This document shows, one piece after another, positions 6,601 to 29,876 of a stretch of DNA of 64,000 bases. The stretch comes from Lepidodermella squamata. Its lineage: Eukaryota; Animalia; Gastrotricha. Position 1 is the stretch's first letter. Each line of letters starts with the position of its first letter. The stretch spans positions 4,650,001 to 4,714,000 of the forward strand of contig JBLDXI010000009.1 of assembly GCA_047495785.1 (NCBI GenBank), written 5' to 3'. A program made the translations under genes and the position numbers. The notes beneath the pieces were generated by a model. That model saw nothing but the letters and a program-made list of their open reading frames with translations, did not search any database and was not told where the DNA came from.

Positions 6601-8174
6601 TCGACCAGGCCACGCATCAGGATGAGGTGGAGACTGGGCTTGAATTAGCTGGAATTTCGTTTTTCGAAAATTGTGTCAAGCCAGAGTCACGGCCAACCAT
6701 TGCAAAACTCCAGGCTGCAAAGTTGAGGAGTATCATTATCACAGGCGATGACGTTAGAACCGCTGTCGCAACTGCCAGAACTGTCGGTATTGTTGGCGAG
6801 TATGTGATGCTAGTGACTGAAAGCGGCAATGACTCGCAAACTGTTTCGGCAAGTGCCTTCATCAAAATGAATGCGCTGAATGAGTTGAACGATCGGCTGC
6901 CGTTTGGAAGTGTTATCGCTGTAACAGAGGATTCATGGCAAATCTTACGGCAGCATTTGAGCACAAGGTTACAAATCCATTTTTATTTAAACTCCTTTAT
7001 AAGTTTTATTGTTCTTTAGCCTCAGCGCTCTATCTGCATTCCAAGTTCTACTCGAACGCGGCGCGGTTTTCGCTCGTTTCCGCCCCGAGCAAAAGGCTGA
7101 AGTTGTAGCTGAATATCGACAAAGATTTGGCTTTATAGTGGCTATGATTGGAGATGGGGCCAACGATTGCTGCGCTCTGAAAGCAGCGGATGTTGGAATC
7201 GCTCTGACCGAGGCCGAAGCATCCGTAGCCAGCGCTTTTACCTGCAAGAATCGAAACGTATCCCCAGTAGTCGATATCCTGAAAGAAGGGCGATGCTCTT
7301 TGATCTCAACGTTTGGCCTGTTCAGTGTCATGGTGTCCTATTCTTGCGTCCAGTTCTCGTCTATGTGCATTCTGTACTGGTGCCAGTCGAATTTTGCCGA
7401 TTTTCAGTTTTTGTATCTTGATTTGTTTCTGTTGACTACACTTTCCCTTGTCTTCCCACTTGTACCTGCCTTCCATCAAGCCCTCAGTGATAAACGACCG
7501 CATCGCCGCTTGCTGTGCTTCGGACAGATAGCCCCAATACTTGTCCATAATGCGGTCAATTTAGCCTTCCAACTTTTCGTTTTCCATTATGTCAAACGTC
7601 AGCCTTGGTTCCTGCCTTACAATATTCCACAGGTAAAAATGTGCTAAAAATTGCCTCATGTTAAAGGATTTGCGTTTAGGGAATGAACTCTAAGCGTCAG
7701 TACAACAGCTTCGAGTCGTATTCGGTCTTCAGTGTTTCGATATTCCAATATGTTTGGTCAGCCCTGATATTCTCTCGAGGCGCTCCATTTCGCAGTCGAT
7801 TCTATCGGAGCCGAGCATTCAGTGCTCATTTAGTCCTACTCCTTATAGCTAACCATGCCATTGTTATTTACCTCCCCGAGCCACTGAGGCGCATAATTGA
7901 AATTTTCCCACCTCCATCAATGGGATACCGCTATCAAATGATAATTCTAGCATACATCAACCTAGCAACGAGTTTCATTTGCGTTCGAGCGGTGGAGGAA
8001 TTTTCTCAATCGAAATTGCTTGGAAGAATTCGAAGACGATTGTCAGGACCTAAACACAATGCGGAAGATCAGCAGATGGGATTTCTTGTCAGCAATCATC
8101 CGTCGCAGCAAGTTATCGAGAATGTCGATGTCGATGCGATTGAGATGCGATTGAGCCCAGAAATAGATGCCTGA
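3686..8174 (+). CDS. P5B-type ATPase (ATP13A2-5-like cation/polyamine transporter)
   Basis: Exons 3686-4422, 4475-6967, 7020-7632, 7680-8174 (introns 52, 52, 47 nt; frames join). Motifs LVPGD, DESMLSGE, CFDKTGTLT, KGAPE, TGDD, GDGANDC, ALKAADVGI, EASVASAFT, EGRCSL, FQFLYLDL, SRGAPFR. Confidence 0.93.
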
Positions 8175-8519
8175 AAACTCGTGATTACCTCAAGCATTTA
8201 TAAGCAGATTCCATTTAACAGATAATTCATCTTTATCCACATTTTTAATCAAACAAAATTGCACTTATACTTATCGATTCCATCATCCTTTATTTTGACA
8301 CTTTTTCTTATTATTTATTATTTGTTTTATGGAAAGAAATAAATTGTCTTGATGTTAGGAAATGACACGCTTTTCCCATGTGAGAATGCAGTCGGCAATT
8401 GTAATCGGATATCTCAGTGTGAAAATCTACAGCTATCTAGTGTCATATATGGGTGGTATACTGAAAAGAGAGCGCTAAACGATATTCGTTGGAGCTTGTT
8501 AACGCGTGTCCCGAAAGAA

Positions 8520-10228
8520 TGATTCTTCTGAAGGTAATTTTGTTGTGTATAAATCAGCTCTCATCATTCAGCCAAATGACAACTGTCTCACGGACCCGCG
8601 AAAAAGTTGCGAAGCCTGATCCGCATGCATTCCAAGGTTGCACTTATACTTGTCGATTCCATATATTTTTGTATTTCTCAGCGAATAATATATTTCCAGG
8701 AAATGAGGAGGCCAAACTCATCGACTTCCTGTTCACTAATTATCGCGGCCAGGGATTAGCAAGGCCTATACGCGACTTCAAAAGTGTTATGGAGGTGCGT
8801 TTCCGATTAGGGGTCGATCTATTCTCAGAACTCGACGAGCACACTGGCTACGCTAGGATAGTTGCAACTGTCACTGCGGCTTGGCACGACGAATTTTTAA
8901 AGTGGAACTCAACGCCTCAATTCAGCCATATTGATACCCTACCTATTCTCGGTGATCGGATATTTAAACCCACTATAATCCCGCACGGAAGTAACGGCGA
9001 TAGGGCTCCGTTATTTCACTCGGGCTCGAGAAGCGGTGGAGAACAAATGCCTTTGTTTTGGGTGGACAGCAGCGGCCTAGTTCATGCAACTATAACCCAG
9101 CCGTTTGATACAACTTGCAAAATCGATGTATCAGACTTCCCTTTCGATAATCAAATCTGCGAATTTTACTTCAAAATACTACAATTTCGAACTCCGAGAA
9201 TGAGGCTGAGGTTAGGAAGAAACGAATCAATTGCTAAAAGAGCTGTGGTCGAAAAATTTCGACAGACCCGTTGGAAAGCTAACCCTATGTGGGAGATAAT
9301 TGATGTGAAGCCAGAAGAGCGGTCTTATGCTAGTAGCAATCTAACCTCGGCAAGCTTCACCGCTATCGTCTATCGAATCAATATCAAACGAAAATCAAGC
9401 TACTACATGTGGAATATAATCCTACCTACAGGGTCGATGGCTGCTATTCAAACCAGTGTATTCTTCCTGCCTTTTTCGCCAGAAAGGGTCATGTTTGCTA
9501 TCACAGCTGTTTTGGCTGTCGACATTTTTCAAGGGTCGCTATCCGCTAAAGTTCAAACTGGATCAGAGCCACTGCCTTTGATCAAATACTCGACAGCGCA
9601 GCGTTTGATTGGGATTATCATCACTATCGAGTCGATCATTGTTCTATCTATCACTTTGAATTCAGACCCGCTACCGAGATGGATTGTTTCGATAATGCAT
9701 GGAAAGTTGACGTCGCTGTTGAAGAGGGGGAAAAGCAGCATTGGGAAGACTTTACGGAAGAGAGCTGCGCCGAGTAATTTATCGAATCAAGCTAGCAATG
9801 GAGTGTTGAAATCTCTGGTTATGGTTGCTGGGTCGAAATCGATTGAGAACCACCCTGGCCGGCAAAGTTTCATGATATCTCAAGCCATGCGGAACGACCG
9901 ATGTCGAACTCCGGTGGTTTCTAAACCAATCTACCCAATCGACGAGGATGAGGACGAAAATAACAATGATGATTCATCCAAGTCGAAACAAGTGCGATGT
10001 GCTGAGGAGCCAATCGGACAGCAAATTCCGGGTCGGAAATATGGGAAGAAATACCCATCTCGTAACAAGCGGAGGAAATCATCTGTGCAGTATCAGGAAC
10101 AGGTCCTTGCAGATATGAATTCCCTAGAACGTCATGAATTAGCTATTATTGTTGATAGACTTTCGCTAGGTGCAATTTGTTTAACTTTTGCCTTACTACC
10201 GGTGATTTTCTTCAAATTCTCTGGATGA
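8520..10228 (+). CDS. Cys-loop ligand-gated ion channel subunit, family A, copy A1
   Basis: Signal peptide MILLKVILLC; probable in-frame intron from 8637 to acceptor 8681 or 8699; RP motif, ELDE, WHDEFLKW, Cys-loop CKIDVSDFPFDNQIC, KRKSSYYMWNIILP, four TM segments. Confidence 0.92.
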
Positions 10229-10874
10229 GGTGTTACTTCATAGTTACCAGGAAGGCTTAGCTCGATAAATAAAATCAAGGATACATGTTTTTTGTTTGAC
10301 TTGGATCTGGATGTGGAAGATATTGCGAAATCGGAATTAATTTGAAAAAACTCGGAACCGTAGAACTGTGCTGGATCTGTAAAGTGGAACTGCGCTTTAA
10401 AATAATTTCAAGCGAATATGAATGAACCATAATTACTTATGTTCAAAACACATTTCAATTATCCGCCACCTCCTTGAGCAAATTTTATTTGTCTTTTGCC
10501 CTCTCGTCTCTCTGTCTGCGTGTAATGAACTTGATAGCAATGTCTGCTCGGTCCGTCCGCGAGGCCGGTCGAGAGCTCTTCACGCTGATGTAATTCATCG
10601 TTCGCGTGACAAGCACAGCAAGGACGTTACGCTTATGAGTGGCGCATTCATCGTTTGAGTAATAATAGACTGTCCCAAATGGGAAGAGTGTGCGGTAATT
10701 ACCATGACTTCGTGCCATAATAAACTCATCACCCTGTTTTCAACACTTAATCGATTGGCGATAACCGGAGCAAAAAAACACGAGGTCAAATCTCGATAAT
10801 CCAACGACGCTTTGTCTCGTCGATTACTGAGTTGCCCCAATCTAGACGGATTCATATTACAGATTAAAGAGGCA

Positions 10875-12251
10875 ATGATAATTTTGGCTCTGATATTAGC
10901 AGCAGTTCCTCGAGTCGCATTTGTTAGGGGAGAATACGTTCCCGAAAACTTGACTGAAGGAAATTGTGAGTCTTATTGAATTTGAAAATCATCAATCATC
11001 ATTCTGTTTGTTTTGTAATCAGATGACAATGACATTTTCTACGGAAACGATGAAACAGAGCTGATGCAGCAGCTTATCGGCAGGTACCGCGGTTTTGGGC
11101 TGACACGGCCCATAAACGACTCCCGTCAAGTTATGGACATAACTTTCGACATGGCCATCGATCAATTCGTGGAGCTTGACGAACATACTGGCTATGCAAA
11201 AATCGTAACAACGATCTACGCAGGATGGCAAGACGAGTTCTTAAAATGGGACCAGCTTCCACGTTATTCCAATGTGACAATGCTTGTTCTCGATGCGGGC
11301 AAACAAGTCTTCAAACCCGTCATCATTCCGCTTGGAAGTTCTGGCGACCGATCTCCGGTTTTCCACTCATCCAGCAGGCCACTTGGACGGAATCTGATAA
11401 TGCTCTGGGTAGAAGGAAACGGCCGCGTCCATGCAAGTGCTGTAAAAACTCTTGATACAATTTGCGATTTGTTGGATGTTTCAAAATTTCCCTTCGATTC
11501 ACAATTATGTGAATTCACTTTCAAAATTCCGAATTTTGGGATGCGGCTGAAAATTGACCCGTACGATGAATCCTCAGTGAAGTCGAACCATGTGATTATG
11601 GACACTAATCAAATGTGGGAAATTGTTGAAGTTCAACCTCAAGAGAAGATTCTAGCCGGGAAAGTTCCTGCTATCGTTTACAAAGTCATGATCAGAAGGA
11701 AACCCGAGTTTTACCTGTGGAATATCATCCTACCAACTACGGCGATGGTTGCAATACAATCCAGTGTATTTGTGCTGCCAATCTCACCTCAAAGGGTCAT
11801 GTTTTCTGTGACTACAGTTGTTGCTATCGACATTTTCCAACAGTCTTTGACAATGAAGATCCAGTCATCATCTGAGCCTGTTCCTTTGATCAAATACGCG
11901 ATAGTTCAGCTGATATTCAGCGTCCTCACTGCAGTTGAGTCGATCGTTGTTTTATCGATCATGATTCGTAGTGATCACCTTCCAAACTTTGTTATCCATT
12001 TGGTTTTTGGTCAATGGAAGGACAAATTGTTCAATTTTTCATTCACGAGGAATCTTATGCCGTGCTTTTGCAGGAACGACGATGAGAACAAATTTAGAGT
12101 CGATCTGTCGCCGAATACAGAATTTTGCAACGCAAAACTCCTTAATGCAATGCGGAGGAAAAAGTTTGCGAAATTGCTTGATAAACTGTTTCTTTGTTGC
12201 TTCATTAGTTTCTTCCTGTTTTCTCCAATAGCCTTTTTCGCAATTCGCTGA
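10875..12251 (+). CDS. Cys-loop channel subunit, family A, copy A2
   Basis: Signal-peptide exon 10875-10965 (MIILALILAAVP), intron 10966-11022, exon joins ORF 11064-12251. Cys-loop CDLLDVSKFPFDSQLC; four TMs. Confidence 0.92.
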
Positions 12252-14410
12252 ACAAATTGTTTGTACATATTCTGCGTTCTGGAGGAAAACTGATGTAATC
12301 AAAAGTCAAAAGTGAATATAGGTTTTTCTTTTTTCCTGCTTAAGTAATCTCCGGATTCTTCGTGATTCATAGGAAATCCAATCGTCGTGCATGAATATTC
12401 ACATCTGATAGTATGTGAACCTATGGACGACTGTGTCTGTATCCTGTTTGCAGTGGGTAATCTGATAGCTGAGTAGGCTGAAACTATAAGGTCGTGTTAT
12501 CGTGGACTCGTCTTGGAATCACTACAGAATAAAGTTTATAAAGCTTGCAACAAAAATACTGATTTTACTTGGAGTTTGGTTGTTTTCATCTTCGATTTGT
12601 TTCGGATTTCCATCAAATTTTATTTTATTCAACTTCAATTCTCACTCTCTGCTCGTACTGTTTCCGCAAGTTTCAAATTAGGATTATGAGCAGGAAATAC
12701 CCTTGAGAGTAGTTGGGAGCGAGTTCAAGAGACTCGACTGTTCATAATTCAAAATCGATTTCATGGTAGCGCGCATAATGCTTGTATAATGAATGATTCG
12801 GAGCGAATTGAGCATTTCGGCTCAGCACTTGAGGCGTAGAAATGCCTAGAAACCCCTTAAGATTTCACGGGAAAAGTGAAACGGCTAGGATATTCTGAAA
12901 CAAAAGGCCCATGAATCTATAACTTTACATTGGTACTATTCAAAAAAGCTGTCCTTGATACTCACACGGCCCCCAGGACACACGAGGTCGCTCAATCCAG
13001 GCTCAGTGCCAATACTGGCATGACAATTTTCTTTAAAATAATTTTGTTACACAAATCCGTCATGGATAATGGCTAATTATAGGCGGTATCTTGGAAAATA
13101 AGTAATATTTTGAGTTTGCTCATCATGTTTTTCTGAAGGCAATTATCTCGTCCCGCCAGCTCACAATCACGTGTCCCTTCGATCGAGCGTCGGGGAGATA
13201 AATCGATATGGGCTGGGAGGTAATTACGAGCTCGCCATTATAGTCACTAGCTCAATAGACGTGACCTGCCGCACCACGTGATGATTATTCTTGAGACGCA
13301 ATTAGAGCTACTGCAGCCTTCATTCATCGCCAGATTAGCCAATGCAACGGACCAGAGCATAACTGGGACATTCACTTATTACAATTGAATTCTACGATGT
13401 GGTGGACAATTTACATCTCGACAATATTCTTGATTTGGCGCTTGTAAAAGTTGGACTGTTTAGCTAAATAATTAATTGTTATAATTGAGTGCGCCTACGC
13501 CATTATACTTGCGATTAGGACTTCAATTTCGGTTGATTGCTGCAGATGCAATAATTTCAACATCTAGGTTTTGTATTTCAGAAATGTAAGCAGAGTTCTC
13601 AATCGATAATTAGCCAGTACGCTTTGTTAGATTTTATGAGCTGTTTCCGCTTCTCGCTGTTTTTCGTGTAATGAGTCCCACTTTTTGCGACGTCGATTGG
13701 CATTTTTTATGCGCACTAAAACCACTACACGAGGGCAAGGCCATGTATTTTATTGCAGCGAAAATAACAGAAGATGTACCTCATTTATAAACGGCAACAC
13801 TCGCTGATATTAGTTCTGCGTCATATCAATTCTTGGCCTGTTTGTCCCGCATTTAATTTTCAGTCGCCTCTCAAAAGCAACCGGCTTTTCAGAATTAATG
13901 GGATTCGCAATATCTTGAATTTGATACCGCTAGGCTCTTGCAATTATATGGATTTCGAAATGCCGTTTTTTTCGTATCAATTACAATCTGTGGGCGCCGC
14001 AGACTAGGCGAAAATTTGTCTTCTTGAACTATAAGACATTGAAAACGAACGGAAGCAGCACGCGAAGTAGGATCCACAAGTCAGAGCATTTTAGGTCCTG
14101 GATTCATCAGATCAAAAGGTCCCCAAGGGTGTTTTCTTTTCTTTTCTGGAACTCTCTAGCTGGGGGCACGAGAAGTACTGTAACCCGTCTGCGAGGGAAC
14201 GGGGTGACTCGTATCCCATGGGATCCTCAAATTTGAAAAACCATAAGGAATACGTTTTCAAAATGTTGGCTGGGAAAATGCTGTCTGCCACCCCTTTGGA
14301 GCTAGGCCTGATCACTGACCGTAACTATTTTTACTGAATGCATAGCAGTAAGATTTAATATCTGTGGTTGAATCCTGCCATGTCATTTTAGAAGTTTTTT
14401 ATAATAAGCT

Positions 14411-16256
14411 ATGAATATTTACCTGTTAACAAGTGTTCTCGCCATGGCTAGTCGAACTGCAGCTGATACAAATGATACAAACTCAACTAGTCTGCATATT
14501 GCCAGCACAGAACCTTCAGCTTCAACTATTGCACCTACTGAGAAGACGACCATTACAGAAGGTAATCAATCTACACTAAGGAATAATCTAAAACTTAACA
14601 ACAACTTGATTAGCTAAAACAACAGCAACGATTCCTACGCCGCCAGCTCCACAAGAACCACTTTTCTTTGAAGGCAACGCGGAAACAAAGCTTATCGAAA
14701 AGCTTATGAACAACTATCGAGGTTACGGCTTGACACGACCGGTGAAAGACATAAAAAACGCTATGGATGTTACATTTAAAATGTCAATCGACCAATTTTC
14801 TGAGCTTGACGAACACACGGGTTTCGCTAGGATTGTCGCGACCGTTACCGCTGGTTGGCAAGACGAATTCTTAAGATGGAACCACACGGATGAATTCTCA
14901 CATATTGAAACGTTGCTGCTTCGTGGCAAGGAGATTTTCAAGCCTGTCATCATTCCGGTAGGGAGTAATGGCGATCGAGCTCCAATTTTCCACACGAATG
15001 GACAATCTCAAGATGCAGCTGGTATGTCGGGTGATTCGTCGCTGATATGGACTGAAAGTTCTGGTCACGTAATCGCAAGTGCTACTGAGTCCTTCGACAC
15101 AACTTGCAGATTGAATGTAGCAAACTTCCCGTTCGATCAACAAGTTTGCGAGTTTTACTTCAAAGTACTGCAATTCCGTAATCCAAGGATTCGCCTAAAA
15201 TTGGATAGCAATGATCTGGCCATTCATCGAGCTCAGAAGGTTGGCGTAAGGAAGCAGGGCGACTCAAGATGGAAGTCAAACCCCATGTGGGATATAGCCG
15301 ATGTTGAGGCCGAAGAGCGTTTGATCGAAGGCAGCACTGGTTCAGGGTCTTCCGGGGCTCGATTCAGTGCCGTGGTGTACCGAATCGTTATCCAACGAAA
15401 ATCAAGCTATTACATGTGGAATATCATACTACCAACAGCTTCTATGGCCGCTATTCAAGCCAGCGTGTTTTTCTTACCCGTTTCACCTGAGCGGGTTATG
15501 TTTTCAGTGACAGCAGTTCTAGCAGTCGACATTTTCCAATCTTCGCTGACAACCAAGATTCACACTTCATCAGAGCCGTTGCCTTTGATCAAATACTCAA
15601 CGGCTCAGTTGATTTTTGGAATCATAATTACAATCGAATCAATCTTTGTCTTATCGATCATCATTCGAAGCGAACCTTTGCCTAGATGGATTGTTTGGAT
15701 GATGTTTGGCACATGGAGGGAGAATGTGAAACTCAAGGTCCGTGAATCGTTTCGAAGATCTTTCAGACGGGACAGTTACCACGGCCCTGAACAGAAAGAT
15801 TTCCGATCTCTCGCCGCGAAAAGAGGATCGGGAATCGATCCATCTAACATCAGCAGCCCTATCCTAGTCCCGCGGCCTGTCGACAACAGTGTTAAGAGCT
15901 GCCGGATGATTCGAACCCATCTTTTCCCAGGCATCAACTACGGCGGGGATGACTCAATGCTAGAAGAAGCGCAAGAGCAGGAGATCTCTTCAATGAAGAA
16001 AGCAAACGGAAATAAAGGCGGTGAAAATATGCCGGCGGTAACTTACGATGGTTATGTTACTACTCAAATTACCGGCAACGGAAGTGCGGATGAAGCTGCG
16101 AAGCAGCAAAGTGCGGCTAGCCAAAGGAAGTCCTCGAAGAACATTATTGCGATGCAGCGGAAGCATCTTGTCAAAATAATCGATCATTTTTTCCTATTTT
16201 TCGTCGGCACCTTTTTCATGCTATCCCCGGTTATTTTTTTCAAGCTTTCAGCTTGA
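14411..16256 (+). CDS. Cys-loop channel subunit, family A, copy A3 (Thr/Ser-rich N-terminal extension)
   Basis: Exon 14411-14561, intron 14562-14613, exon 14614-16256. Cys-loop CRLNVANFPFDQQVC; four TMs; C-terminus SPVIFFKLSA. Confidence 0.93.
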
Positions 16257-18542
16257 TTTGCCCGATTATTTCTCTCTATGAAATTTCTGGTTATATTTTG
16301 TACTTGAGGGTCACAGTTTGCTGGGTGAAAATTGCTTCTTCACGCAAACACGTTTAGCCTTCATTGTTTTTACCGAGTTTAATTTTCGGCGTAACAAATC
16401 ACTTGTCTCATATCTTTTATGCAAAATAAAAGCAACAACATCGAATGACTTTTTTGGGACTTTGTCGATAACTAGGAACTAGGACGTAGCATTCGCAATT
16501 GAATTATAAGATTCGAGGTCTTATTGACTGGTAACTCTAAGACTCAGGAGAATATTGTTTATTGTCTGTAATTGGCTCACCCATTATAGACTATTTAGAT
16601 ATCAGCCTACAGAGTGGTTGTATTGACTATTGACTATAGCAGTCTAATTGAGTTATCTCTCAATTTCCTCGATTTTTTTCAGCAGACTATGCAGAATCTC
16701 TAAACTGTCCTGAAGAAAGCCCACAAGCGACTCGAAAGAGCGCTTATTCGGGACACATGGCCTCGGCCCGTCATATTCGTCGAATGGGACGTCTCAAACA
16801 AGGAATTTTCGTATGCGGAATCGTTTGCTTTTCCAAAATACTCCATTTAATTTTGTTATGCGCCGTCTTCCGGCTTTTCAGCCAATTTGAAAACCGTCTG
16901 GCTGGATATCTAATAATTCCTGCAGGCTGGCTTTTAAATGGGACACATTTTGCGAAAACTGCGTGGGCATCAATTTGCTTCTTCTATTTCAAGAAACCTT
17001 TAATTCCTGGAATCGGAATCAGGCCATTATTTCCGTTACTTGCAGGTTTTTTTCGAGATGATGTATGATATAACCATGTGGGCACTCACTGGACGTAGGG
17101 TCATAATCCACCCAAGGGCCTTACTAAGAATCGCGTAATCGTGAACAAAGCATAATTATTGAAGTCATCGCAATAACCGACGTTGTTAATGTCTTCAATA
17201 AGCTTCGCTGTTTGTTATATCGAAATGAAATTCACACCTCGTCAACATCGTATACTGCAGGATATTTCGCATTCAATCAGGCAAGATAGAAGCAAACGTT
17301 TTCCTTCTTGGTGAAATTGCACCCCAACTCACACGGAGCTTTTGATGTTATCAAGTAAGTGCTATTCATACCTCAAATCACCTGAACGATTCCAGTCTCC
17401 CGCGAAATTCGGATTTACAAGCCGAAATTTCAATTTCATAGTAGTCGGGAATAGCTATTTTCGCCGCCGCGTAACGGACAAATTGCTCGTGTCTTGGCAA
17501 TGCAAACGGGTGTTTGTTTTGGTTTTTCATGGCATAAATCACGCATGAAATATTTAATTTAAATATTTCCGCTCCGCTTGGCGCAGTTATGAATAGCTGG
17601 AGATGTGTTTAAAATTAGGACGAAAGAGGGGCGCTTCTTATGAATCGAGGATTAGAGACACAAAGAAAGGATTCGAAATTCGCGGCGTGAATATATACAA
17701 ATTCAGAAGCGCACGGAAACCGAGCAAAACTATGTGCCATGTTAAACACAAAAATGGTCCGATTTCAGGGGATGCATAATTTATTATTACAAGGAATTCT
17801 CGGAACTAGGACTCGGTCCCTAATTAACATATGCACACATAAATTATGACTGAAATTCTGGAGCTTTCAATTCAATAATTCATCCTCTAATTGCATACCT
17901 CTTAATTCGGGGGATGCTTAATTAGCATTGTATGGATTCATAGCTCTGAAAAACAGCACTTTACAATCCCCTGATTTTAGGGCCTACCTCTGAATTCAGG
18001 TGGAGCAACCCCTGATTTCGAACCACATTTTTTCCCAAGTATTCCCACCCCTTTTACTGACGGAATAGATGTAGATGCTTTGAAAGCTTTCGTCATTAAT
18101 TTGCGGGAGAAATGTGTACATTTATCCCATCAATCACGCTTGCGGGAAAATAAATTAGACTAATTGATTTTTCCGCCCCACCCAACAAAATAAATACACT
18201 TAAGCCCGTTTCAAGCGAACACTCACCAAATTAATGCCACGTTTATCCACCTCACTGGCGCGGCGTGATGGAAAACTAGAAACGAGGTAGTGTCCTTTTT
18301 CAGCCAGGACAGAAATGAACGTGCTCAACTGAGTGCAGCAATTGTCTTTATCCATGTCATTTGGCATATTGTTATATCCAATGATCAGCGTTTATAGCCT
18401 TTAAATTATAGCTTATGGTTTAAAATATGATAGGTTACGTTGAAATTTGACCCTAGAGAAACACTTATCCCCACCTACTACGTGATTTTATAAGAGAAGC
18501 TAAACAAACGGCCAACTAATCATTTCCTAGGTTTTAAGCGAC

Positions 18543-20291
18543 ATGCTCTCAGAAATATTCGCAATAGCAATTCAACTGACGTACATCGCAGCCAATTCCC
18601 TCTCACTCTTCGAAGGTTTGCTTGACACTTCATCTTACGACCCCGAATCTAATTTTCTACAACCAGGGAATGAGGAGACGAGGCTCATTGAAATGCTGAT
18701 CAAGAATTATCGAGGTTTCGGGCTAACCCGGCCAATGAAAGACATTCGAAACTCAATGGATGTCAATTTCCAAATGGCAATCGACCAATTTTCCGAGCTG
18801 GATGAACACACAGGTTACGCCAGGATCGTTGCTACGGTTTCAGCGGAGTGGCAAGACGAATTCTTGAGATGGAACGATTCAGAGGAATTTCACCACATCG
18901 AGACACTTCTGTTGCGCGGTAAAGAGGTCTTCAAACCTGTAATTATACCAGTCGGAAGCCACGGTGATAGATCGCCAATTTTTCATGCTTCCCAAGGCTC
19001 TGCTGGGCCATCTGGAGATTCCGCCTTGATTTGGACTGAAAGTACTGGAAGAGTTCACGCTACAGCGACTGAATCTTTCGACACAACCTGTAAAATGGAC
19101 GTCGCCGATTTCCCTTTCGATCAACAAAGCTGCGAGTTTTACTTCAAAGTACTGCAATTCCGCAACCCTAGAATACGCCTTAGGCTAGATAACTATCACT
19201 TGGCAAAACTTCGCCAAGCTAAGGAGAGGAAATCTGCGTGGATGTCGAATCCGATGTGGAGGATTTCCAACGTTGATGCCGAAGAGCGGATTTTGGGCTC
19301 ATCGGAGAACGTTAGCTCGGCGAGATTCAGCGCTGTTGTCTATCGAATCAACATTCAACGTAAATCCGGTTACTACATGTGGAATATCATTCTACCAACA
19401 GCTTCGATGGCTGCAATTCAAGCCAGTGTTTTCTTCCTACCGATCTCACCCGAGCGAGTCATGTTTTCAGTTACAGCCGTTTTAGCAGTCGATATCTTCC
19501 AGTCATCGCTAACAACGAAAATCCACACCAATTCAGAGCCTCTTCCTCTAATTAAGTACTCAACGGCTCAATTGATGATGGGTATTATCATAACGATTGA
19601 ATCGATTCTTGTCCTGTCTATCATTGTCAAAACCGATCCATTACCCAGGTAGGCGTCTCAAGTCATGTCGGATTTCAGAAACCTTTTCATTCTGATTAAT
19701 TTCCCCCACAGATGGATAGTTGCAGTCACGCGGGGTAATATTAAGTTCCTGTTTGAGAAGCAAGAAGGCGAGGATATTGAAACGGCGACGACATCCCCCG
19801 GTGATTCGCAATCATCGAAAACGAGCGGGACAAAGGATATCGGCGTTCAGGCAAAGTTGGGAATCGAAAGGTCAAATAGCTCTACACGAAACTTGCCTGT
19901 TCCCCAGGCCAATCTACCGAGCTGCAGACTGATAAGAGCATCAGTCTTCGCTGGGATGATCTACGGCGGCGGAGGGGAAGATGATGGAAATAACAGCGAA
20001 GTGGATTTAACCTTTGAACCCGACGCGAACTCAGAAATTCCAAAGTCTAACCACAGCTCGATGCGAAGGGGCGGGGCCCACAATAGCAGCGTTGTTTATA
20101 AGCCTCAAGCTTCTCGAGAAACATACAACAAGTTCGTGAAGCGACGTTCAACGGCACGCTCTACGATATTGGCTGATGTGGTACTGACGCAGCGCCAAGA
20201 GCTTGCTCGTTTTGTTGACAGATGTTTCCTCATAACAATATGCTTCTTTTTCGTCTTTTCCCCGGTGATTTTTTTCAAATTGTCAGCTTAA
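18543..20291 (+). CDS. Cys-loop channel subunit, family A, copy A4
   Basis: Probable in-frame intron 18616-18666; intron 19649-19711 after M3 joins ORFs 18543-19652 and 19665-20291. Cys-loop CKMDVADFPFDQQSC; closest to A3 in sequence. Confidence 0.93.
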
Positions 20292-21013
20292 TGCTGTTCA
20301 CTATGAGCGGTTTTATTGAAATTAATTCTTCCTCATTAAAAATCACGGTAACCAATGCGAAAATATGACTGCATTCTTTTGATATTGCTTGTGTAAGAGT
20401 TACAAGAAAATTTGCCCCAGAGTAAGCCTAATTCCTAAACCTCACGTATGTAACCACATGACATAATTAGCTAGGAAAACGAATGAAATACAGTATATTA
20501 CATGTTATATATCGGTTGTACTTTCTGTCCAAATCGTGCTGAGGTGGCTCCATACATTCTTTACTTAGCATGGGCTGCGACGGAAGGTTCTGTTCATATC
20601 ATCATAACATCACGGTTTATGACGCATCGTCCAGACAGAAGACAGAATCACGTTTGAGGTTTTTTTCCCGAATATCCGATTTCTATCTGGACACTCCCAA
20701 CGTCGAAGTACATGGCAGAGTTTGCTTATATTCCACACGGCGACCTACGCTGATTTCCTGCTAACATAAATAGTTACAAAAGTAATGCGAAAAATGTGGC
20801 AAATCTCGTGAATTTTCGTGATATTATACAACATCCGGGTGGATATCATGGGTGTATAGCAATATGGAATATCGGCCTGAAGGACGAATTATAATTAATA
20901 TTATAAAATAAAATAAAATAAAATTTGAGCTTTGTCGCGATTAGGTGCTGGATTGTCTTCTTCAGCAATTCTTCTTCAGCAATTCAAAGCGGTGTTTTAA
21001 AGTTTCGGAATGC

Positions 21014-21432
21014 CTATTCGTACATAGTATGTACGCGAAAATTGCTATTCGTACATAGTTTCGACATGCTTTTTTCTAAGATAAACGACTTGCTCAATAA
21101 TCGTCCCATCGATCTAATTTTGTGTGCGCTGATAGCTGATCATCAGGCCTATCTCCCCTCAAAAAATCACCGTTGAACCCCCTAAGGTAGAGTTTAGTGT
21201 CGCAAAATGGCATTATTTGAATTGTTTTTACGACCCTAGCTTTGGAAGACTTTGGAAGATAATATGACGAAATTTGACCACTGGATAGGCCTCACTTTGC
21301 TGCATTTCCCTGTGAAATTCCATGTTATCATCGTCAAATCTCGAATTTCCAAACCCATTTGAATAACTCTGAAAAATCGCGAAAAACTATGTACGAATAG
21401 CAATTTTCGCGTACATAGTTATGTGCGAATAG
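21014..21432. mobile_element. MITE-like element with ~47-bp terminal inverted repeats
   Basis: CTATTCGTACATAGTATGTACGCGAAAATTGCTATTCGTACATAGTT at 21014-21060 recurs inverted with about 3 differences at ~21386-21432; non-coding interior; no clear target-site duplication. Confidence 0.65.
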
Positions 21433-21786
21433 CTTGACCATTAAAGTTTTAACTTTGTGAACGTTTTCTAAACCGGACTCGATCGAGTCGCGCCGGACAA
21501 AATTCCCTGTGAAACATGGGCAATTTTAGACGACATACGACATCCGGCATACGCGACGTCTGGCTTTGCCCAGTACATACGAGGCAACTTTCACCTTTCA
21601 CGTTTTCACGTGGGCCGTACCGCTTCCGCGGTAAAACCAATATTTTCGACAAAAGACACGTAGGTACTTCCCGTTCGACGAACCGATAACAGATATGCGA
21701 CTCATGTTTCAAAGTTTCAAAAAGCCTCGGATTATGCTGAACTTGTCAAGGGTATGCAAACGTGACTTTCCACGCTCAAGACATAA

Positions 21787-24700
21787 CTAGCAAAGTATCA
21801 GGCGGCCGCTATAGCGGCCGCCATTGTATCAACATATGCTTAAATAAAAGATCGTCTTTATTTCTCATATATCATTGATATTGTTGGTTTGACAGGTTAT
21901 ATTCAGTTGCAGTTAATTCACAGTAATTTTCTAATGTCAAATGTTGATTATCGCAGCGATAGAAGCTAAGAAGGTCACCATTTGCTGTCGGGGTGGTCTA
22001 AAACGAAACAGTAAACATAGGGGTAACAATGATATCAATTAATTTACCTGTTGATAGATGTATACGTTGTTGTCAAGCATGACTATTACTGGAAACCACA
22101 CATTTAAAAATTTTCTAAATGGAGTAAAGGCATAGTCAATTTTTTGCGAAGGAACAGTAATCAGTTCAAAATTTTTTTGAATACAACGTTTCTCATGTAG
22201 AAACGTTTTGTTTGGGGGCATTTAGGGACACATAAAAAAATTTCACGACTATCTTTGGCGCGGCTCAGTGCAACGTATGCCATGCCATGACAGAAGACTC
22301 CTTCAGGTAGGAATAAACCTACGCCATCGAGTGACTGCCCCTGGCTTTTATTAATGGACAAAGCCCAGGCCAGTTTAACGGGAAATTGCCGCCGGCGCAT
22401 TGCGATTATCTCGCTCGAGTCGTCAGTTGTTAATGCAATGCGGGGTATGAAGACTTCTTTGCCACAAAACGACCCTGCAGTAACGATGCGGCATTGTAAA
22501 GTGTTGGGATGCAAGCCGGTCACTTCTAATCTCGTTCCGTTGCACAGGCCACCTGATGGGTTCAAATTCCGTAGTAAGATGATAATTGCACCCATTTTTA
22601 AGGTAAGGTTGTGCTGAGGTAGAGAAGATGGATTCAAGGAGTTTAAAAATTCGAGAGGAAAAGCAGCTACTCGCGCTGGGTCGTCGACGCTGTCGTAGCT
22701 CAAGTAGACGATAGGATTCCCAGGTATGCGTGAAAGTATTTTGCTGTTGACATAATCAACCTCGACATTTTTAGCAGCAAGCAAACAGCGGTTGTAGCAC
22801 TTGCTGGCGTTGTAGTGTTTTAAATTACCGAAAAGCTGAAATATTAAATCATCCAATTTGTCGACACATTTTAAATAATGTGGGACGTAAAAGCTATCCG
22901 CTGTGGGACCTCGTTCAACTGGTAAGTCGCCTTCGTTGTAGCGAGCTTCACCGATCCGTAGCAGGTCCTCGCTGAATCCTGGATCGCCGCCTTGCAGACG
23001 CATGTTAACAGATAGATGGTACTGCTTAACATGCTGCCACAAACTGGAAGATTTGAGGCACGCTTTCCAGTAATCAGATTCACCCAACGCTCGTTTCACA
23101 ACAGTTGTACATTGCCGGAAATCGCCACCCAATAAGACAACTACAAAAGAGATATTTCGAATTTGATGTCATCAAATAATTCGGAATCTTACCTTTACCG
23201 CCAAATGGTTTATTAGATTGACAAATATCGCGAAGGGTGAAGTCGAGTGCCTCAAATGCGTAACGGTGTAGCATTGGCGCCTCATCAATTAGAATCAACG
23301 CTGATTCTTTCAGAAGAGCACATAGGTTACTGTTTTTGGAGATTGAGCATTTAGATGATTCGTTCAAATTTATAGGAATTGCGAATCTAGAATGGGCTGT
23401 TCGACCGCCTTGAAGTAGTAATGCAGCAATACCGCTGGAAGCTGTAGCCAAACAAATTTTTGATTCGCTTCGTAACTTCGCCAATATTGTTGAGTAGGTG
23501 AATGTCTTTCCAGACCCACCTGGCCCATCCAAAAAGTAAACACCTCCTTCGTTGTTGTTAACAGCGTGTACAATTGCGTCGTAGAGTGAGCGTTGACATT
23601 CGTTTAACAACGGCTTGTTAATTTCGATTGTACGTCGGAGAGATTCCAAATCGTAACTTTTTTCTTCGATGAGCAAGCGATTGCTATTCGAAATGACAGG
23701 CGGCAGTTGAAATTGGGCCAAACTTTGGCCATGTTGAGCAAGCAGATCAGACAAATGTAGTAAACCCTTTTCGTAAATGGCGTCAGAATAGCCGGTGTTA
23801 GGGTTGATAATTTTCGCCGCATGTAGAAAATCGGAGCATAGATCATCACGAAATCGCATCCAAATTTCGAAAGGCTCAGCTGGTTGACCATGTAATAAAA
23901 GGTAGGAGAAGAATTCACGGCATGATTTCGGCGACGCATGTGAGATCACCTCTTCCATCGACGCGATATTCTGTAAATCATCTTCGAGCAATCCCATCAA
24001 GGAACATGCACGTTGAAAAGTTTCGCATACAACACCTCCAACGGTTTTCAGGTCATCAAATGATGTGGCACCGGCTTTATGTAGTAGAAGGAGGCGTAGG
24101 TAGTACAGCTCACCAGACCTAGGACTGACGTGGTACATTCTACCAACCGGATCTAAACCGAACGGAGGGGCGGTAAGACGTGGTTTCCATTCCAACAGTT
24201 TTTCATTGAATGTGAAACTTTCCGGGAAGTGATGGTATTTTACGTGCCTCCCATCTTCATTAGCGGCGTTATATCGAAACCAAGCATTTAAGGTGGACTT
24301 CGATTTCAATTTCTGTAGATCAGGTAGCTTGTCTTGATTGAAATAAACAGGCTCTTCCTGAGGTAAGTGTACAGCTAATCTCGTAACAGATGGCCAGTTG
24401 TCATGCATTGGAAAGGAGAAAGTTCGATAAGCAGCTTCCATTGCAGAAACTGAACGGGCGTCCACGAATTCTTTGATTTCGTCAATTATCCCACCTTCGG
24501 CTAAAGCTACCAACTGCCGATCCTGACCTGCGATTAAATACAAAACTTTGTTTTAAAATTAAATATTTAAAAAGCAGTATCTAACCTTTATGGATGTATT
24601 TGTAAATGTACTTGATCGCCTTAACAGTGGTACAAATTTCCACATTGATATGGCAGTTGAATCTTGATAGTAGCCACGGGTTGTAAGGTACGACCCATCG

Positions 24701-27415
24701 ATTGTCAAATTGAAACTTTTTGGTGCCCTGTCCTTTAACGTGAGTACGCCCATCGTTGCTTCGTCTCATTTGCGGAAAACCATCACCGTTGACGCAAGTT
24801 TCTTCCGAAAAACTTTTCGGGTAATTTTTTGTGCAACCATCTTTCGAATCCCAGCAAGGCGATGATTGATGTTGAAGCCCGCACGGGCCATGTAGCATAT
24901 GTCTGGTGACAAAGTCGTGCAATTTAGGTTCCAACTGAGGATCCGGAATTTCGGCTCGAACAACTTTATCCATCTCTGCCGCAGTGTTAATCTTTTTATC
25001 CAAGGTTACCAAGATGTGAGCATGCGGCAAACCTCGTTTCTGGAATTCAACTGTGTAGATCAAATTCTTCACATTTCCGAAAACTTTATCTTTAAGGATG
25101 TTGTCGATGAGTTCACGCAATTTTACTCGGAATACACGGCAAACTAATTCCGGACGATCGGTTGCACTCTGTCCTGGCAGCAGGTTGCGTTGAATTTCAA
25201 CCCAATTGCTGTTCGTTGTCATGGTGATGAACAGATCGGGCTTGCCGTCGCGTCTAACAATTGACATGGCGTCTTGATAAAGTTCCGACATTTGTCGAGG
25301 AGAGCCACTTTTCGTTGAGGGTAATACGATTCGAACTTTAGTTCCAATATCAGAGCCGTCTCGTCCATCGCCTACAGCATCGCAAAATCCACGATAATTT
25401 TCGACTCTCAATTTATCTTGATTAAAGCGTATGAAGCCCAAATCGTTGGTTTCGATTTTTAAAAAGGAATCGACAACAAATTGTTGAAATAACTTTCCGA
25501 ATAGATGAAGAACAACTTGCCCACGTATCATAAGGCGGTGGCAAATATAGTCGCGGCATGTTAACTTTGCTTGTCGAGGGTTACCATTTTCATCCACCTT
25601 AACCGTCCTACGAAAAAGCGTCATGTCCCAGCCAAGATCACCAGATGAAAATATCAAAGGATAAGCAAGCGGATCATAATGTGCGTTAGTTTCGTCGATG
25701 CGCTGATATTGCGGACCATCCGGGCCAGTTCTGAGACGTAACACAATATCTCGATGAATATCTTTCTCGTCGTTGTATTGATAGAGCAAGCCGGAAACTT
25801 CTCCATCGCACTGGGGACGATTGTAACGGCGACGATCGATGCCGGTAACATTAGCTTTGATGGCTAATTTAAGGTCAGGGCAAGTCTGAAGGCGTGACAA
25901 ACCCATCGAATAAAGGCTGATGTATGGGTTGTTAACATCGTAAAGCATTTGCTGCAAATTAGCCAAGATATGATGTTCGACAGTGTCACCGACAAAACCT
26001 CTGCGCAACAGCAGCTGCGTTTCAGGATCGGTGAAGTAGATCTGAAGGTAACGCGGCTGCTGGCCTTCATTAGGCAACAAACAGCCGTGCCGATGATGCA
26101 GGGCGCCTTGAACCTTAAAACTGCCGAAATTTGGTGATACATCATTTAATCCAACTGATGTAAATGCTAGCGCGTTGTTGTAAATACGAATCGATCTTTT
26201 GAAATTCGCGGAATCGGCAGATTGGTTCAATAACAGCTGACTGAGATAATTGGGCGGCGTAGACAAAGGTGGAAGTTCAACCTATTAACATGCTCTGCAT
26301 TAAAGATGACATTAATAAGTGAAGTTAGACAGACCTCGTTATGAGAGCAACACAGAGAAAACTTTGGATTAGTCCTAGAAGAGCTGACCAATCGCTCGTC
26401 AAGGAAGAAAAGAGCACCACAATGCTGGCAGGGTATATCCATAGCACCGACATCATATGTAGGCACGTTGCGCTCAACGTATACTTCTCGGGCACAATTG
26501 AAGGGAGGAACGAAACGCTTCTTTTGCCTTTCGGGAACGACACCGGCGGGTCGAACAACTGATTCTTCCTCAGCATAGTGATCATACGGGTCATCATTTT
26601 CCCCATCTTCGTCATACGGAATGTCTGGAATTGCAGCCTGAGCCTCATCACGAATTAAAGCAAGAGGTAATGATTCATCAAGCGCAACATCTGATCTCGC
26701 AAGAACCAGCGGTTCGACTAACGTGATTATCTGTCTTGAGAAAACAGGAGGATTTGGAGGTTTTACGGAAGGAGGCGGAACAAAAGGATTATCCTCAGCG
26801 TAAACATGATCACCAGACGTGCTAGCACCCTGATTCTGTGGCTGTTTTGCTCGCTTTCTTCTATCTTCCGCCTTCAACGTCAGCGGGCGTTTGCCTCTCT
26901 TCCCTGGGGGTCTCCCTCCAGGCATTATGAAAAAACCTAAAAAAAGTGCAAGTGGGAGTAAAGTAAATAATGAGTTTTGAATCAAAGCAACGATATGGGC
27001 AGAACTGCAGAGTAGAACTGCAGAGTGGACACCTGGATGGTGTTGGCTTCCGACTTCCGACGAAGGAGCTTGAGGAAAAATTAAAATTTGAAAATGATTA
27101 GTTGCTAAGGAATTAAAATAATTCAAAATTAAATTAATAGAGCGTTAAAAATATTATTCCTTTTTATTTTTAAAATCTGTTCAATAACAAATAGCGCTCA
27201 ATTTGTTTTAGGGCATTTTTGACATCGGCGATTTGACGGAGTCAAAAAGTCAGAGTTTTCGCACCCATAAAATTTTATTCTCTATCTACTGATATCAAAT
27301 TTATGATTATGGGCCATACGTAAGTATGATATTAAGCGTATGCGTTGAGCGTCCAATCAGCTTTGAGAAATTCAAATCTCAGCCGTTGAGTACCTCCGCC
27401 GTTTAGTAGTTTAGA
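21787..27415 (-). mobile_element. Autonomous Helitron, apparently full length (5.6 kb)
   Basis: On the minus strand, 5' end A|TCTAAACTACTAAA at 27415 (best candidate). 3' end: perfect 22-bp palindrome GGCGGCCGCTATAGCGGCCGCC (21801-21822), 10 nt spacer, CTAG|T ending at 21787. Inserted between A and T with no TSD; encodes RepHel. Confidence 0.9.
22161..26925 (-). CDS. Helitron RepHel transposase (zinc finger, HUH Rep, PIF1-family helicase), 1533 aa
   Basis: Exons 26925-26335, 26281-24586, 24527-23193, 23140-22161 (introns 53, 58, 52 nt) total 4602 nt with no internal stop. Motifs CQHC..CC, PDLFITMT, VEFQKRGLPHAHIL, KYIYKYIHKG, DGPGGSGKT, IDEAPM, GGDFRQ, SINKSQGQSL, HGMAYVALSR. Confidence 0.96.
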
Positions 27416-28657
27416 TTTAAACCCGCTAGGAGATGTTATTCGAATCTAATGAACCCAGAACGTAAGAGACCTGAGATTTAAGGTCGATTGTTTATCGAAA
27501 GAAGCGAAAACTCAGTTTCTACTAGCAAATAATATCCTACCTATCTGCACCTATCCGATGTTTAAATAAGCTTGCTGCATCTTCCTAATGTTTCGCTAGA
27601 ATGAGCAGGAAAATCGATTCAATCTCGAACCACGTGTGCCAATCGTGGCACTTCGGGAAAACTGATCGGCATGCGTGTCGAAACTGGATCGCGGGTTTTG
27701 ACTGTGTGTGCTAAGCAAGTTTGATTACAAAATTAGAAATCCCCGTTTTTTCTTAGTTTAGAAGCTGTTTGGGCGCATTTTTATGTAAAATACCTCACAA
27801 CGATTATATATTTAGAATTCAGAGTCATCAGAAAGAGGAGAGCACTATCTAGCGACTATGTTATCCTGATTAATCTTCTTAATCAATTGGCTACAAATGG
27901 CAACAAATTAAATTATTTATTTTGCGGCCTCCGTTTGAATAATGTACAACAAAAAGTACAACAAATTTCAATTACCCATGCGGGTTTTGGGGACGGCGAC
28001 GGGCGATCTGCTCGGGTCCGAGGCATCTGTCGCGAACAGCCTGCTTTTATTATAAAATTCATAATTTTCTAAGGCTTTTTTATTTTTAGGCATTCACAAG
28101 ACTTTCAGTGTCACATTCGCCCTGTCGGATAATATTTCCTAAGTATTTCAACCCTCTATCGTACGACTCAGTTCCTTGACGTCACATGGATTAGCCCATT
28201 ATCAATATTCGGTATACAGTCTGTCATGAACAATCCGAGGATCGTCCTTAGAATATAACATTTAGTCTACTTTCCTGTTGGGTTGTTAAATTCCATGTTT
28301 TGCTGGCGTAGGAACTTCCTATACTCGAAAATAATTTATATTTATCGTCTACCAGTACTTTTTATTTTTTTTTGGAAAATGCTCACTAGTGATTAAATAG
28401 GTCGATAGCTGAGACGTCCAAATTGTCTAGTCATCACTTGATCATCTGTTCTCCTGCTAACTCTTATTTACCGAATAGCATCATCAAACGTGAAATTAGG
28501 TGCGTGCTCCCCATATCATATATTTGAGTCAAAAATTGAAAACTACTGACAGATATCAAGTTTCACAACTTTCGCCATAGTTCTGACATAAGGGAGTGAT
28601 GACATTATAATTTACAGCTATTTCAATTCAGCTGACGGTTGACTCTAAAATTGCAGG

Positions 28658-29876
28658 ATGGTTTGCAGTTTTCCTCTCCTAATAATAAGCTGTTCATTGT
28701 TACCCGGGCAGGCCACTTTATTTCAAGGCAACATCGAAAATCGCCTGTTAGAGAGGTTGTTAGATGGTTACAGAGGCCGCGGCTTGACCCGGCCAATGAT
28801 GGACATAGAGCATCCGCTGAAGGTACATTTCCACATGGAACTTTACCGATTTTCCGAGCTCGACGAGCACACGGGACATGCCCGAATTATTGCAACAGTT
28901 TCAGCTGATTGGCAAGACGAATTTTTGAAATGGAATGCATCCAGCGACGCTACAACTTTGTTTTTGGGCAGTAGAGACATTTTCAAGCCAACAATCATTC
29001 CAGTGGGTCGTTTCGGCGATGGCGCTTCTCTTTTTGGAAATTCAAAGAATGTTTTAACGTGGGTTGAAAACTCAGGAGCTGTACACGTTTCTACGGTTAA
29101 AGCGTTCGACACGTTTTGTGACATCGAGGACACGGACTTCCCGTTTGACCAACAGACCTGCGAATTCCGTTTCAAAGTGCTCAGCTTCAAGAAGCCTCGG
29201 ATTATGCTGCACTTACAGGAGGTTCACGAAAACTTGACTTCCCATCAGGATTTGAACCCGCTATGGAGTGTTGTTCGAATCGACGCCAATGAAGACAGCG
29301 AAACTTCTAGTGAGTTAAGCTCGATAGTTTACCGCATAACCATCAAGCGAAAAACCAGTTTCTACTTATGGCGAATTATCCTGCCTACAACTTGCCTATC
29401 TGCTATTCAAATTAGCCTGCTGCTCCTTCCTATTTCGCCGGAAAGAGTCATGTTTTCTGCAACCGCTGTGCTTGCTATCGACATTTTTCAATCTTCTCTG
29501 GCAACGACGCTCCAATCATCAAAAGAACCTTTGCCAATAATGCGATATTCCAATGCTCAGCTGGTGGCAGGAATTGTGATAACAATCGAATCAGTTGTAG
29601 CAGTTTTCATAATCTCAGACCGAAGAGAACTCAACAGGTAAGCATACATTGTTTTTAATCATGACATTTTTCGCAAACGTAATTCTGCCAAATAGATGCA
29701 TTCTTCGGATTCTTAATTCGAGCTGCAGGGGCAAAAGCAGCAGCAAAGATTCATCTACAATTGGTATGCAGAGATTGAAGCTTGCAGAAGTCATGGATCA
29801 AATTTTCTTTTATTCCGTCGTGGCTTATGTAGTGATTTCACCCTTGTTTTACTTCAAGCTTATTCATTTCTATTGA
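28658..29876 (+). CDS. Cys-loop channel subunit, family A, copy A5 (very short M3-M4 loop; start uncertain)
   Basis: ORF 28658-29637, intron 29638-29695 (same position as in A4), last exon with M4. Cys-loop CDIEDTDFPFDQQTC; PISPERVMF. Confidence 0.88.

Follow-up and report, generated by a model that had tools for sequence, protein, structure and literature searches.

The primary studies of the chemotactile receptors (CRs) of cephalopods are reportedly those of van Giesen (2020) and of Allard and Kang (2023). CRs are pentameric cation channels derived from nicotinic acetylcholine receptors (nAChRs), and they are gated by hydrophobic molecules (reviewed in PMC11526382). In molluscs and annelids, massive tandem expansions of intron-poor nAChR genes have been described, in which the alpha-type genes whose products bind acetylcholine (ACh) are a minority (Jiao et al. 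2019, PMC6896357). Alpo4 from Alvinella pompejana (PDB 8bx5) is an orphan nAChR-like channel whose structure has been solved and which responds neither to ACh nor to serotonin (5-HT) (PMC10338036). Here we describe five genes, g1 to g5, which encode subunits of Cys-loop ion channels of the pentameric, ligand-gated type (pLGICs) and lie in tandem in a stretch of 64,000 nucleotides from the gastrotrich Lepidodermella squamata (contig JBLDXI010000009.1, positions 4,650,001 to 4,714,000 of the forward strand; the whole stretch is referred to as the window). We argue that these genes form a constrained, lineage-specific family whose products are probably gated by a non-cholinergic ligand, at an interface pocket that has been remodelled.

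The array occupies 21 kb of the plus strand, where five complete subunit genes and one relic follow one another head to tail (Table 1). The spliced models of g1–g5 are complete open reading frames (ORFs) with no internal stop, and each contains at most one intron, small and of the GT–AG type. An in-frame N-terminal intron is possible in g1 (approximately 8637–8681 or 8637–8699), but none is certain in this gene. A 30-nt repeat (90% identity) is found upstream of g1, in the intergenic region (8254–8283), and again within this possible intron (8633–8662). The Pfam ligand-binding domain (LBD) family Neur_chan_LBD (PF02931) matches all five genes, with E values from 6e-19 to 1e-28. The Pfam transmembrane family (PF02932) matches g1–g3, and the gathering score is passed by g1 and g3, while g2 reaches 24.7 bits for a cut-off of 28.1; no match is obtained with g4 and g5, whose ORF is broken by an intron after M3. 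A hydrophobic N-terminus (signal peptide), M1–M3 and a C-terminal M4 are nevertheless present in each of the five genes. The M3–M4 loop is very short in g5 (about 35 residues) and reaches up to about 170 residues in g1, g3 and g4. The Cys-loop, which reads CKIDVSDFPFDNQIC in g1, is of the form C-x13-C in g1, g3, g4 and g5 and C-x14-C in g2, one residue over the canonical length; its FPFD core is invariant. An earlier sequence-only reading of this DNA had announced five same-strand paralogs with the Cys-loop and the four transmembrane segments intact, between positions 8520 and 29876. The complete models, the Pfam matches and the M1–M4 segments agree with this description; the end of the span is exact and its start is one base off, the first Met of g1 being at 8519. 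The count of five is right as far as intact genes are concerned, but it missed a sixth copy, which has decayed.

The core of the proteins, from before beta1 to the end of M3, aligns readily, and identity to g3 is 54–79%. The adjacent genes g3 and g4 are the closest pair (79% in the core), g1 ranks after them, and divergence is greatest in g2 and g5, which fits a stepwise tandem duplication. In all ten gene pairs, the proportion of synonymous differences (pS) is saturated, from 0.71 to 0.85, while the proportion of nonsynonymous differences (pN) is only 0.14–0.36; this points to old duplicates under purifying selection. It has to be considered that the genes may be decaying duplicates that no longer function and are on the way to becoming pseudogenes, since one copy of the array did decay after the insertion of a Helitron and since many intron-poor nAChR copies are expressed at low levels (Jiao et al., PMC6896357). 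We find this hardly credible for g1–g5: the five ORFs are complete, their GT–AG introns are correct, amino-acid divergence is limited to 14–36% although synonymous sites are saturated, and the gating and pore motifs are the best conserved parts of the proteins. Pseudogene status was rejected for these genes, in view of their complete ORFs and of this constraint, and accepted for the relic only. Judging from their sequences, g1–g5 are intact and under constraint.

The saturation of pS in every pair makes it infeasible to calculate ratios of nonsynonymous to synonymous substitution rates (dN/dS) for loops A–F between paralogs, so that per-region identities were used instead. The mean pairwise identity is highest in the beta1–beta2 loop (95%), loop A (79%), M2 (75%) and M1 (72%), and lowest in the tip of loop C (13%), in loop F (22%) and in the insert that follows loop A (34%). 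Conservation thus peaks in the parts of the protein that are involved in gating and permeation, while divergence is focused on segments of the pocket region, loops C and F.

The residues of the binding pocket were read from three independent alignments, obtained with HMMER against bovine beta and human alpha6, with a profile against alpha7, and with MAFFT together with alpha4, alpha2 and an insect alpha. In loop A, the canonical WKPDILLY is replaced with FKP(T/V)IIP(H/L/V), and the position of TyrA is occupied by His, Leu, Val, Val and Val in g1 to g5, respectively. In loop B, KFGSW becomes (Y/T/R)FK(I/V)(L/P), so that the Trp of loop B (TrpB) has given way to Pro in g2 and to Leu in the four other genes. 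The Trp of loop D (TrpD) is Thr in all five. Loop C, whose tip consists of 6 to 15 residues and which is longest in g3, contains neither the Y-x-CC motif nor any Cys or Tyr; TyrC1 is absent, and the position of TyrC2 has a Phe in g1, g3 and g4, with Val in g2 and Leu in g5. The aromatic box, which normally consists of five residues, is therefore down to none or one, and both the principal and the complementary faces are affected. Other residues of interest are a Phe at the position of alpha7 Y151 (five genes out of five), a new, invariant Trp in loop E at the position of alpha7 L109 and, also in loop E, a His at the position of alpha7 Q117 (four genes out of five). After loop A, the motif GDR(A/S)PxFH is the counterpart of DERFDATFH, which is specific to alpha7; that it is still recognisable indicates an alpha7-like ancestor, and only the Gly/Ser-rich stretch behind it is an insertion relative to alpha7.

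The substitutions in loops A, B, C and D had been described in the sequence-only reading, and all three alignments reproduce them. Its statement that there is no aromatic pocket is justified insofar as the canonical box is nearly gone, but it is overstated considering the Phe residues at the TyrC2 and Y151 positions and the Trp of loop E. On the basis of these alignments, we consider that the canonical site in which ACh or an amine is held by cation–pi contacts is absent from both subunit faces of g1–g5, and that the pocket is remodelled, not emptied of its aromatic residues.

The elements that couple binding to gating are kept in g1–g5: the beta1–beta2 loop ELDEHTG, the FPFD Cys-loop, the Arg that precedes M1 and the Pro between M2 and M3. 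M2 reads E(-1') R V M F S V T(6') A V L(9') A V D I(13') F Q S S L T T, and it is preceded by SPER in g1, g3, g4 and g5, and by SPQR in g2. The acidic residue at position -1' and the absence of the Pro-Ala-Arg motif of anion channels are marks of the cation branch, and the best PDB matches are all cationic receptors. The pore is predicted to be of the cation type, with a Glu at -1', a Thr at 6' and the usual Leu gate at 9'; in g2, these two outer positions, -1' and 9', have Gln and Val instead. The most divergent copy of the array, g2 is thus unusual on four counts, if its C-x14-C Cys-loop and the replacement of TrpB with Pro are included.

The AlphaFold2 model of the g4 core is a confident one, with a predicted local distance difference test score (pLDDT) of 89 and a predicted template modelling score (pTM) of 0.84. 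It superposes on the muscle, alpha7, alpha3beta4 and alpha4beta2 nAChRs and on 5-HT3A with template modelling (TM) scores of 0.7–0.79, at 18–21% identity. A profile search of the PDB gives 87 bits for alpha7, 82 for 5-HT3A, 77 for DEG-3 and 73.5 for Alpo4. With vertebrate alpha7 and 5-HT3A, which are the best matches (TM score about 0.75), g1–g5 share the fold, FPFD, the pre-M1 Arg, the Glu at -1', the Leu at 9' and the counterpart of the alpha7 motif DERFDATFH. They differ from them in that identity is only 19–21%, all the residues of the cation–pi box have been swapped, the Cys-Cys pair is missing, and the Gly/Ser-rich insert is present after loop A.

We propose that g1–g5 would be an old tandem array of functional paralogs, the products of which would assemble as pentamers into a Cys-loop cation channel, with an alpha7-like nicotinic receptor as its ancestor. 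The channels would still be opened by a ligand that binds between subunits; it would not be ACh, nor an amine held by the usual cation–pi contact with TrpB. The remodelled pocket is predicted to be aliphatic and polar (Val/Leu, Thr, and the new Trp and the His of loop E). The hypervariable loops C and F may give each paralog its own specificity. The subunits probably mix into heteromers, as suggested by the tandem co-location of five paralogs and by the atypical g2, which, with its changes at -1', 9' and TrpB, would be the likeliest modulatory or accessory partner. We consider, with moderate confidence, that gating by a non-cholinergic ligand at the remodelled interface pocket of a constrained paralog array is the probable function of the locus. 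Several points weigh against this proposal. The pocket residues were identified by aligning sequences, and the alignment of loop C is uncertain. In M2, the Met at 2' and the Asp at 12' are unusual. Last, no ligand was ever found for Alpo4, which is a similar orphan with the aromatic box still in place (PMC10338036); considering the failure of that search, the term "ligand-gated" remains an assumption when it is applied to g1–g5.

g1–g5 and Alpo4 have several features in common: both are nAChR-like orphans that have no Cys-Cys pair in loop C and have a His in loop E, and the ring of Met residues in the pore of Alpo4 may be compared to the Met at 2' in g1–g5. On the contrary, Alpo4 keeps a full aromatic cage (F103, W159, Y199, Y205 and W65), which g1–g5 have lost.

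The fact that both binding faces are degenerate is also what would be expected of subunits that occupy a non-binding position. The nicotinic subunits alpha5 and beta3 are found in such an accessory position. It may be that g1–g5 are all structural or accessory subunits, which work only with ligand-binding alpha-type partners encoded elsewhere in the genome; that g2 departs from the others at pore positions too is in line with this. We regard this as improbable. Five conserved paralogs, a sister group elsewhere and hypervariable pocket loops are more than an accessory function needs; besides, there is no alpha-type partner within the 64-kb window, and in the three remaining pLGIC genes TrpB or the Cys-Cys pair is missing as well.

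The complete loss of the aromatic box could also mean that these channels do not respond to an organic orthosteric ligand, but to protons, a metal ion or another non-classical signal, as is the case of PBO-5/6 in C. elegans or ZAC in vertebrates. PBO-5/6 is an example of such channels, which open in response to a small signal that is inorganic or non-classical. The conserved His residues are consistent with such a mechanism: one is in the invariant ELDEHTG, one at the position of alpha7 Q117 (four genes) and one in GDRxPxFH. However, these histidines are few, a metal-binding cluster is not evident, and a simple ion sensor would not be expected to have loops C and F so strongly diversified, so that we give this mechanism little credit.

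Regarding phylogeny, a word-indexed homolog search with g3 returned nAChR alpha subunits as best matches, at 23–26% identity, and nothing closer. When 1.84 billion representatives were searched exhaustively with a profile, 6092 pLGICs were retrieved, only a handful of which are close to g1–g5. The closest by identity are P0140 (36%), P0141 and P0291 (30%) and P0149 (27%); these and the next ring of sequences (P0205, P0266, P0272 and P0269) are all ORFs that come from a small number of metagenome assemblies in the ENA. The contigs that carry them hold ordinary, nearly intronless animal genes, and some of them again have adjacent pLGIC genes. In two contigs of the nearest relatives, L004 (8517–11053) and L007 (355–3268), adjacent pLGIC genes stand beside nearly intronless housekeeping genes, and L005 carries a single-exon ACADVL gene, present as a tandem duplicate. 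The ACADVL of the nearest relative falls within the protostomes, where its branch is long and has no close partner. A scan of JGI metagenomes for closer relatives yielded a single distant locus, with 27% identity.

We built a tree of 105 domains, which consist of the five genes of the array and the 100 nearest nAChR-like representatives. In this tree g1–g5 are monophyletic (support of 100 in the Shimodaira–Hasegawa-like approximate likelihood ratio test, SH-aLRT), and their sister group consists of P0140 and P0141 (support 96). The whole is nested in a clade in which all sequences are environmental, and the named sequences, from Schistosoma, Owenia, molluscs, nemerteans, echinoderms, jellyfish and vertebrate alphas, are further out. 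P0140 and P0141 still carry a Trp at TrpB, which implies that TrpB was lost on the branch leading to g1–g5, before the duplications. The pLGIC phylogeny that the sequence-only reading had asked for thus places the five genes in a clade of their own, next to environmental ORFs, and this clade, which as far as the tree tells is specific to the lineage, has no annotated relative. The idea of an independent orphan lineage, put forward in the same reading, is upheld by this monophyly and by the position of CRs outside the top PDB matches: the structures of octopus and squid CRs are not among the best 60 sequence matches in the PDB, nor among the best 50 fold matches. With no sign of close kinship in these sequence and fold rankings, g1–g5 would be an offshoot independent of CRs.

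The degeneration of the pocket is not very unusual: aromatic-box loss is recurrent in the superfamily. TrpB is absent from 30 of the 100 domains of the tree that are not from the window, and 24 of them have no more than one aromatic residue left out of the five in the box. On the tree, the loss of the box among the 105 representatives requires at least 17–19 independent changes, at least 19 for the presence or absence of TrpB and at least 17 for the state with one aromatic residue or none. Since the box is lost in roughly one in four of the nearest representatives, a degenerate pocket alone is no evidence of chemosensation.

This bears on the comparison with CRs, which g1–g5 resemble in several respects: the descent from nAChRs, the loss of the ACh-binding residues, the tandem cluster and the diversification at the ligand pocket (PMC11526382). 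It may be that g1–g5, too, are chemosensory receptors, as the sequence-only reading had suggested; they would be produced in peripheral sensory cells, would respond to environmental and probably hydrophobic molecules, and would be convergent with the CRs of cephalopods. The pocket residues are mostly aliphatic, and the neighbourhood is rich in genes of receptors and channels (a class-C GPCR-like gene, a PKD-like gene and three further pLGIC genes), as this hypothesis would have it. On the other hand, the same outward features are found in many nAChR-like expansions for which roles in development, immunity and stress have been proposed (PMC6896357), the box is equally degenerate in approximately 24% of the nearest representatives, and it is usual for loops C and F to be hypervariable between paralogs of pLGICs. 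A search for hints of sensory regulation at g1–g5 gave no X-box (0 matches, for 0.31 expected), and no 8–10-mer common to their upstream regions was found. CRs are defined by their sensory expression and their hydrophobic agonists, and the source of g1–g5 is not a cephalopod. A chemosensory function is thus conceivable by analogy, but rather unlikely. The idea that an unsampled, fast-evolving protostome lineage would have achieved a second, independent conversion of nicotinic receptors into environmental chemoreceptors, with paralogs assembled into heteromers of differing tuning, is doubtful as well.

g1–g5 also resemble the expansions of molluscs and annelids (PMC6896357). With 0–1 introns each, they form a head-to-tail array of several nAChR-like paralogs, as do the expansions of Jiao et al. 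(2019), with 0–2 introns per gene; in both cases the genes are tandem, intron-poor and highly diverse, the Cys-Cys pair and the principal ACh-binding residues are lacking in most members, and the ancestry is alpha7-like. The differences are that the clade of g1–g5 has no member in annotated molluscs or annelids, identity to their sequences being 22–27%, and that the duplicates are old, with saturated dS. The small number of introns is not evidence of retroposition, since introns are nearly absent from neighbouring genes too, among them those of the ATPase and PKD; a genome-wide loss of introns accounts for the intron poverty of g1–g5 as well as retroposition does.

The introns give some indications about the history of the array. 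The one that follows M3 is at the same site and in the same phase in g4 and g5, and it is absent from the corresponding regions of g1, g2 and g3 (9670–9700, 11980–12000 and 15680–15700, respectively). g2 and g3 have an intron at the signal peptide. This patchy distribution suggests that introns were lost or, less likely, gained after the duplications. The genes g3 and g4 differ in both introns, despite being 79% identical, and this indicates a recent loss or gain.

The sixth copy lies between g4 and g5, which are 8 kb apart. The space between them also holds a Helitron in opposite orientation, which splits the relic in two. The first piece resembles g5 and spans the second half of the Cys-loop, whose second Cys is gone, and loop B; the probable second piece is collinear with the first, in order and strand, across the Helitron. 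The sixth copy was apparently split and killed by the insertion of the Helitron. A perfect 34-nt inverted repeat (21028–21061 and 21384–21417, with 322 nt between the arms) adjoins the relic; it could be the ends of a small non-autonomous transposon.

Table 1. Coordinates of the genes, relic pieces and other features of the window, counted from its first nucleotide.
Feature	Position	Strand	Details
g1, pLGIC subunit	8519–10228	+	single ORF, 569 aa; Pfam LBD 1.4e-25, transmembrane region 2.5e-07
g2, pLGIC subunit	10875–10965 + 11023–12251	+	439 aa; 57-nt GT–AG intron 10966–11022
g3, pLGIC subunit	14411–14561 + 14626–16256	+	593 aa; 64-nt intron 14562–14625 after signal peptide
g4, pLGIC subunit	18543–19648 + 19712–20291	+	561 aa; 63-nt intron 19649–19711 directly after M3
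g5, pLGIC subunit	28658–29637 + 29696–29876	+	386 aa; 58-nt intron 29638–29695 after M3
Sixth-copy relic, piece 1 (g5-like)	21665–21757	+	DNA repeat; tblastn E 1e-4; hidden Markov model (HMM) positions 133–163, E 1e-4
Probable relic, piece 2	27457–27534	+	beta10 to pre-M1, stop codons; weak alone, E 0.24–0.46
Helitron Rep/helicase coding region	22161–27126	-	four ORF pieces; Helitron_like_N 1.5e-54; PIF1 1.4e-52; Pif1_2B 1.1e-20
Class-C (7tm_3) G protein-coupled receptor (GPCR)-like gene	861–2762	+	
P5-type cation ATPase	3686–8174	+	few large exons; at most 29% identity to any protein found
Further pLGIC gene, other sub-family	~34489–35832	+	related to ENA ORFs P0272, P0266
Further pLGIC gene, other sub-family	~38001–39376	+	related to ENA ORFs P0272, P0266
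Further pLGIC gene, other sub-family	~58677–59944	+	related to ENA ORFs P0272, P0266
ORFs without Pfam match	40196–41167	-	one resembles, by eye, a receptor ligand-binding domain at its N-terminus
Polycystin (PKD1/PKD2-like) channel gene	42419–47329	-	large exons
Fibrinogen-domain gene cluster and tandem epidermal growth factor (EGF)-repeat gene	48402–52887, 54460–55372	-	

The other genes of the window are also listed in Table 1. The three further pLGIC genes bring the number of intact pLGIC genes in the window to eight; they contain several small introns and their M3–M4 loop is very short. A Phe is found at TrpB in the copy that was examined, the second of the three. The divergence of the P5-type ATPase is what a lineage that evolves very fast or is unsampled would show. 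With the long ACADVL branch of the nearest relative, it makes the source a probable member of an unsampled protostome lineage of rapid evolution and compact genome. A chaetognath source fits poorly, as no reduction of introns is reported for the duplicated genes of chaetognaths (PMC12460157), whereas those of the window are nearly intronless. GC content peaks in the EGF region (0.50). Searches of the window for Rfam families and for tRNAs found none.

Taken with the expansions known in molluscs, annelids and others (PMC6896357, PMC10338036), g1–g5 are a new, lineage-specific case of a pattern that is already common in invertebrates. The genes are small and nearly intronless, which would make them easy to clone and test if the organism can be cultured or sampled. 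The locus adds an orphan clade to the nicotinic-type channels that have departed from cholinergic signalling, and g1–g5 and their TrpB-bearing sister make a natural before-and-after pair for what replaces the cation–pi site.

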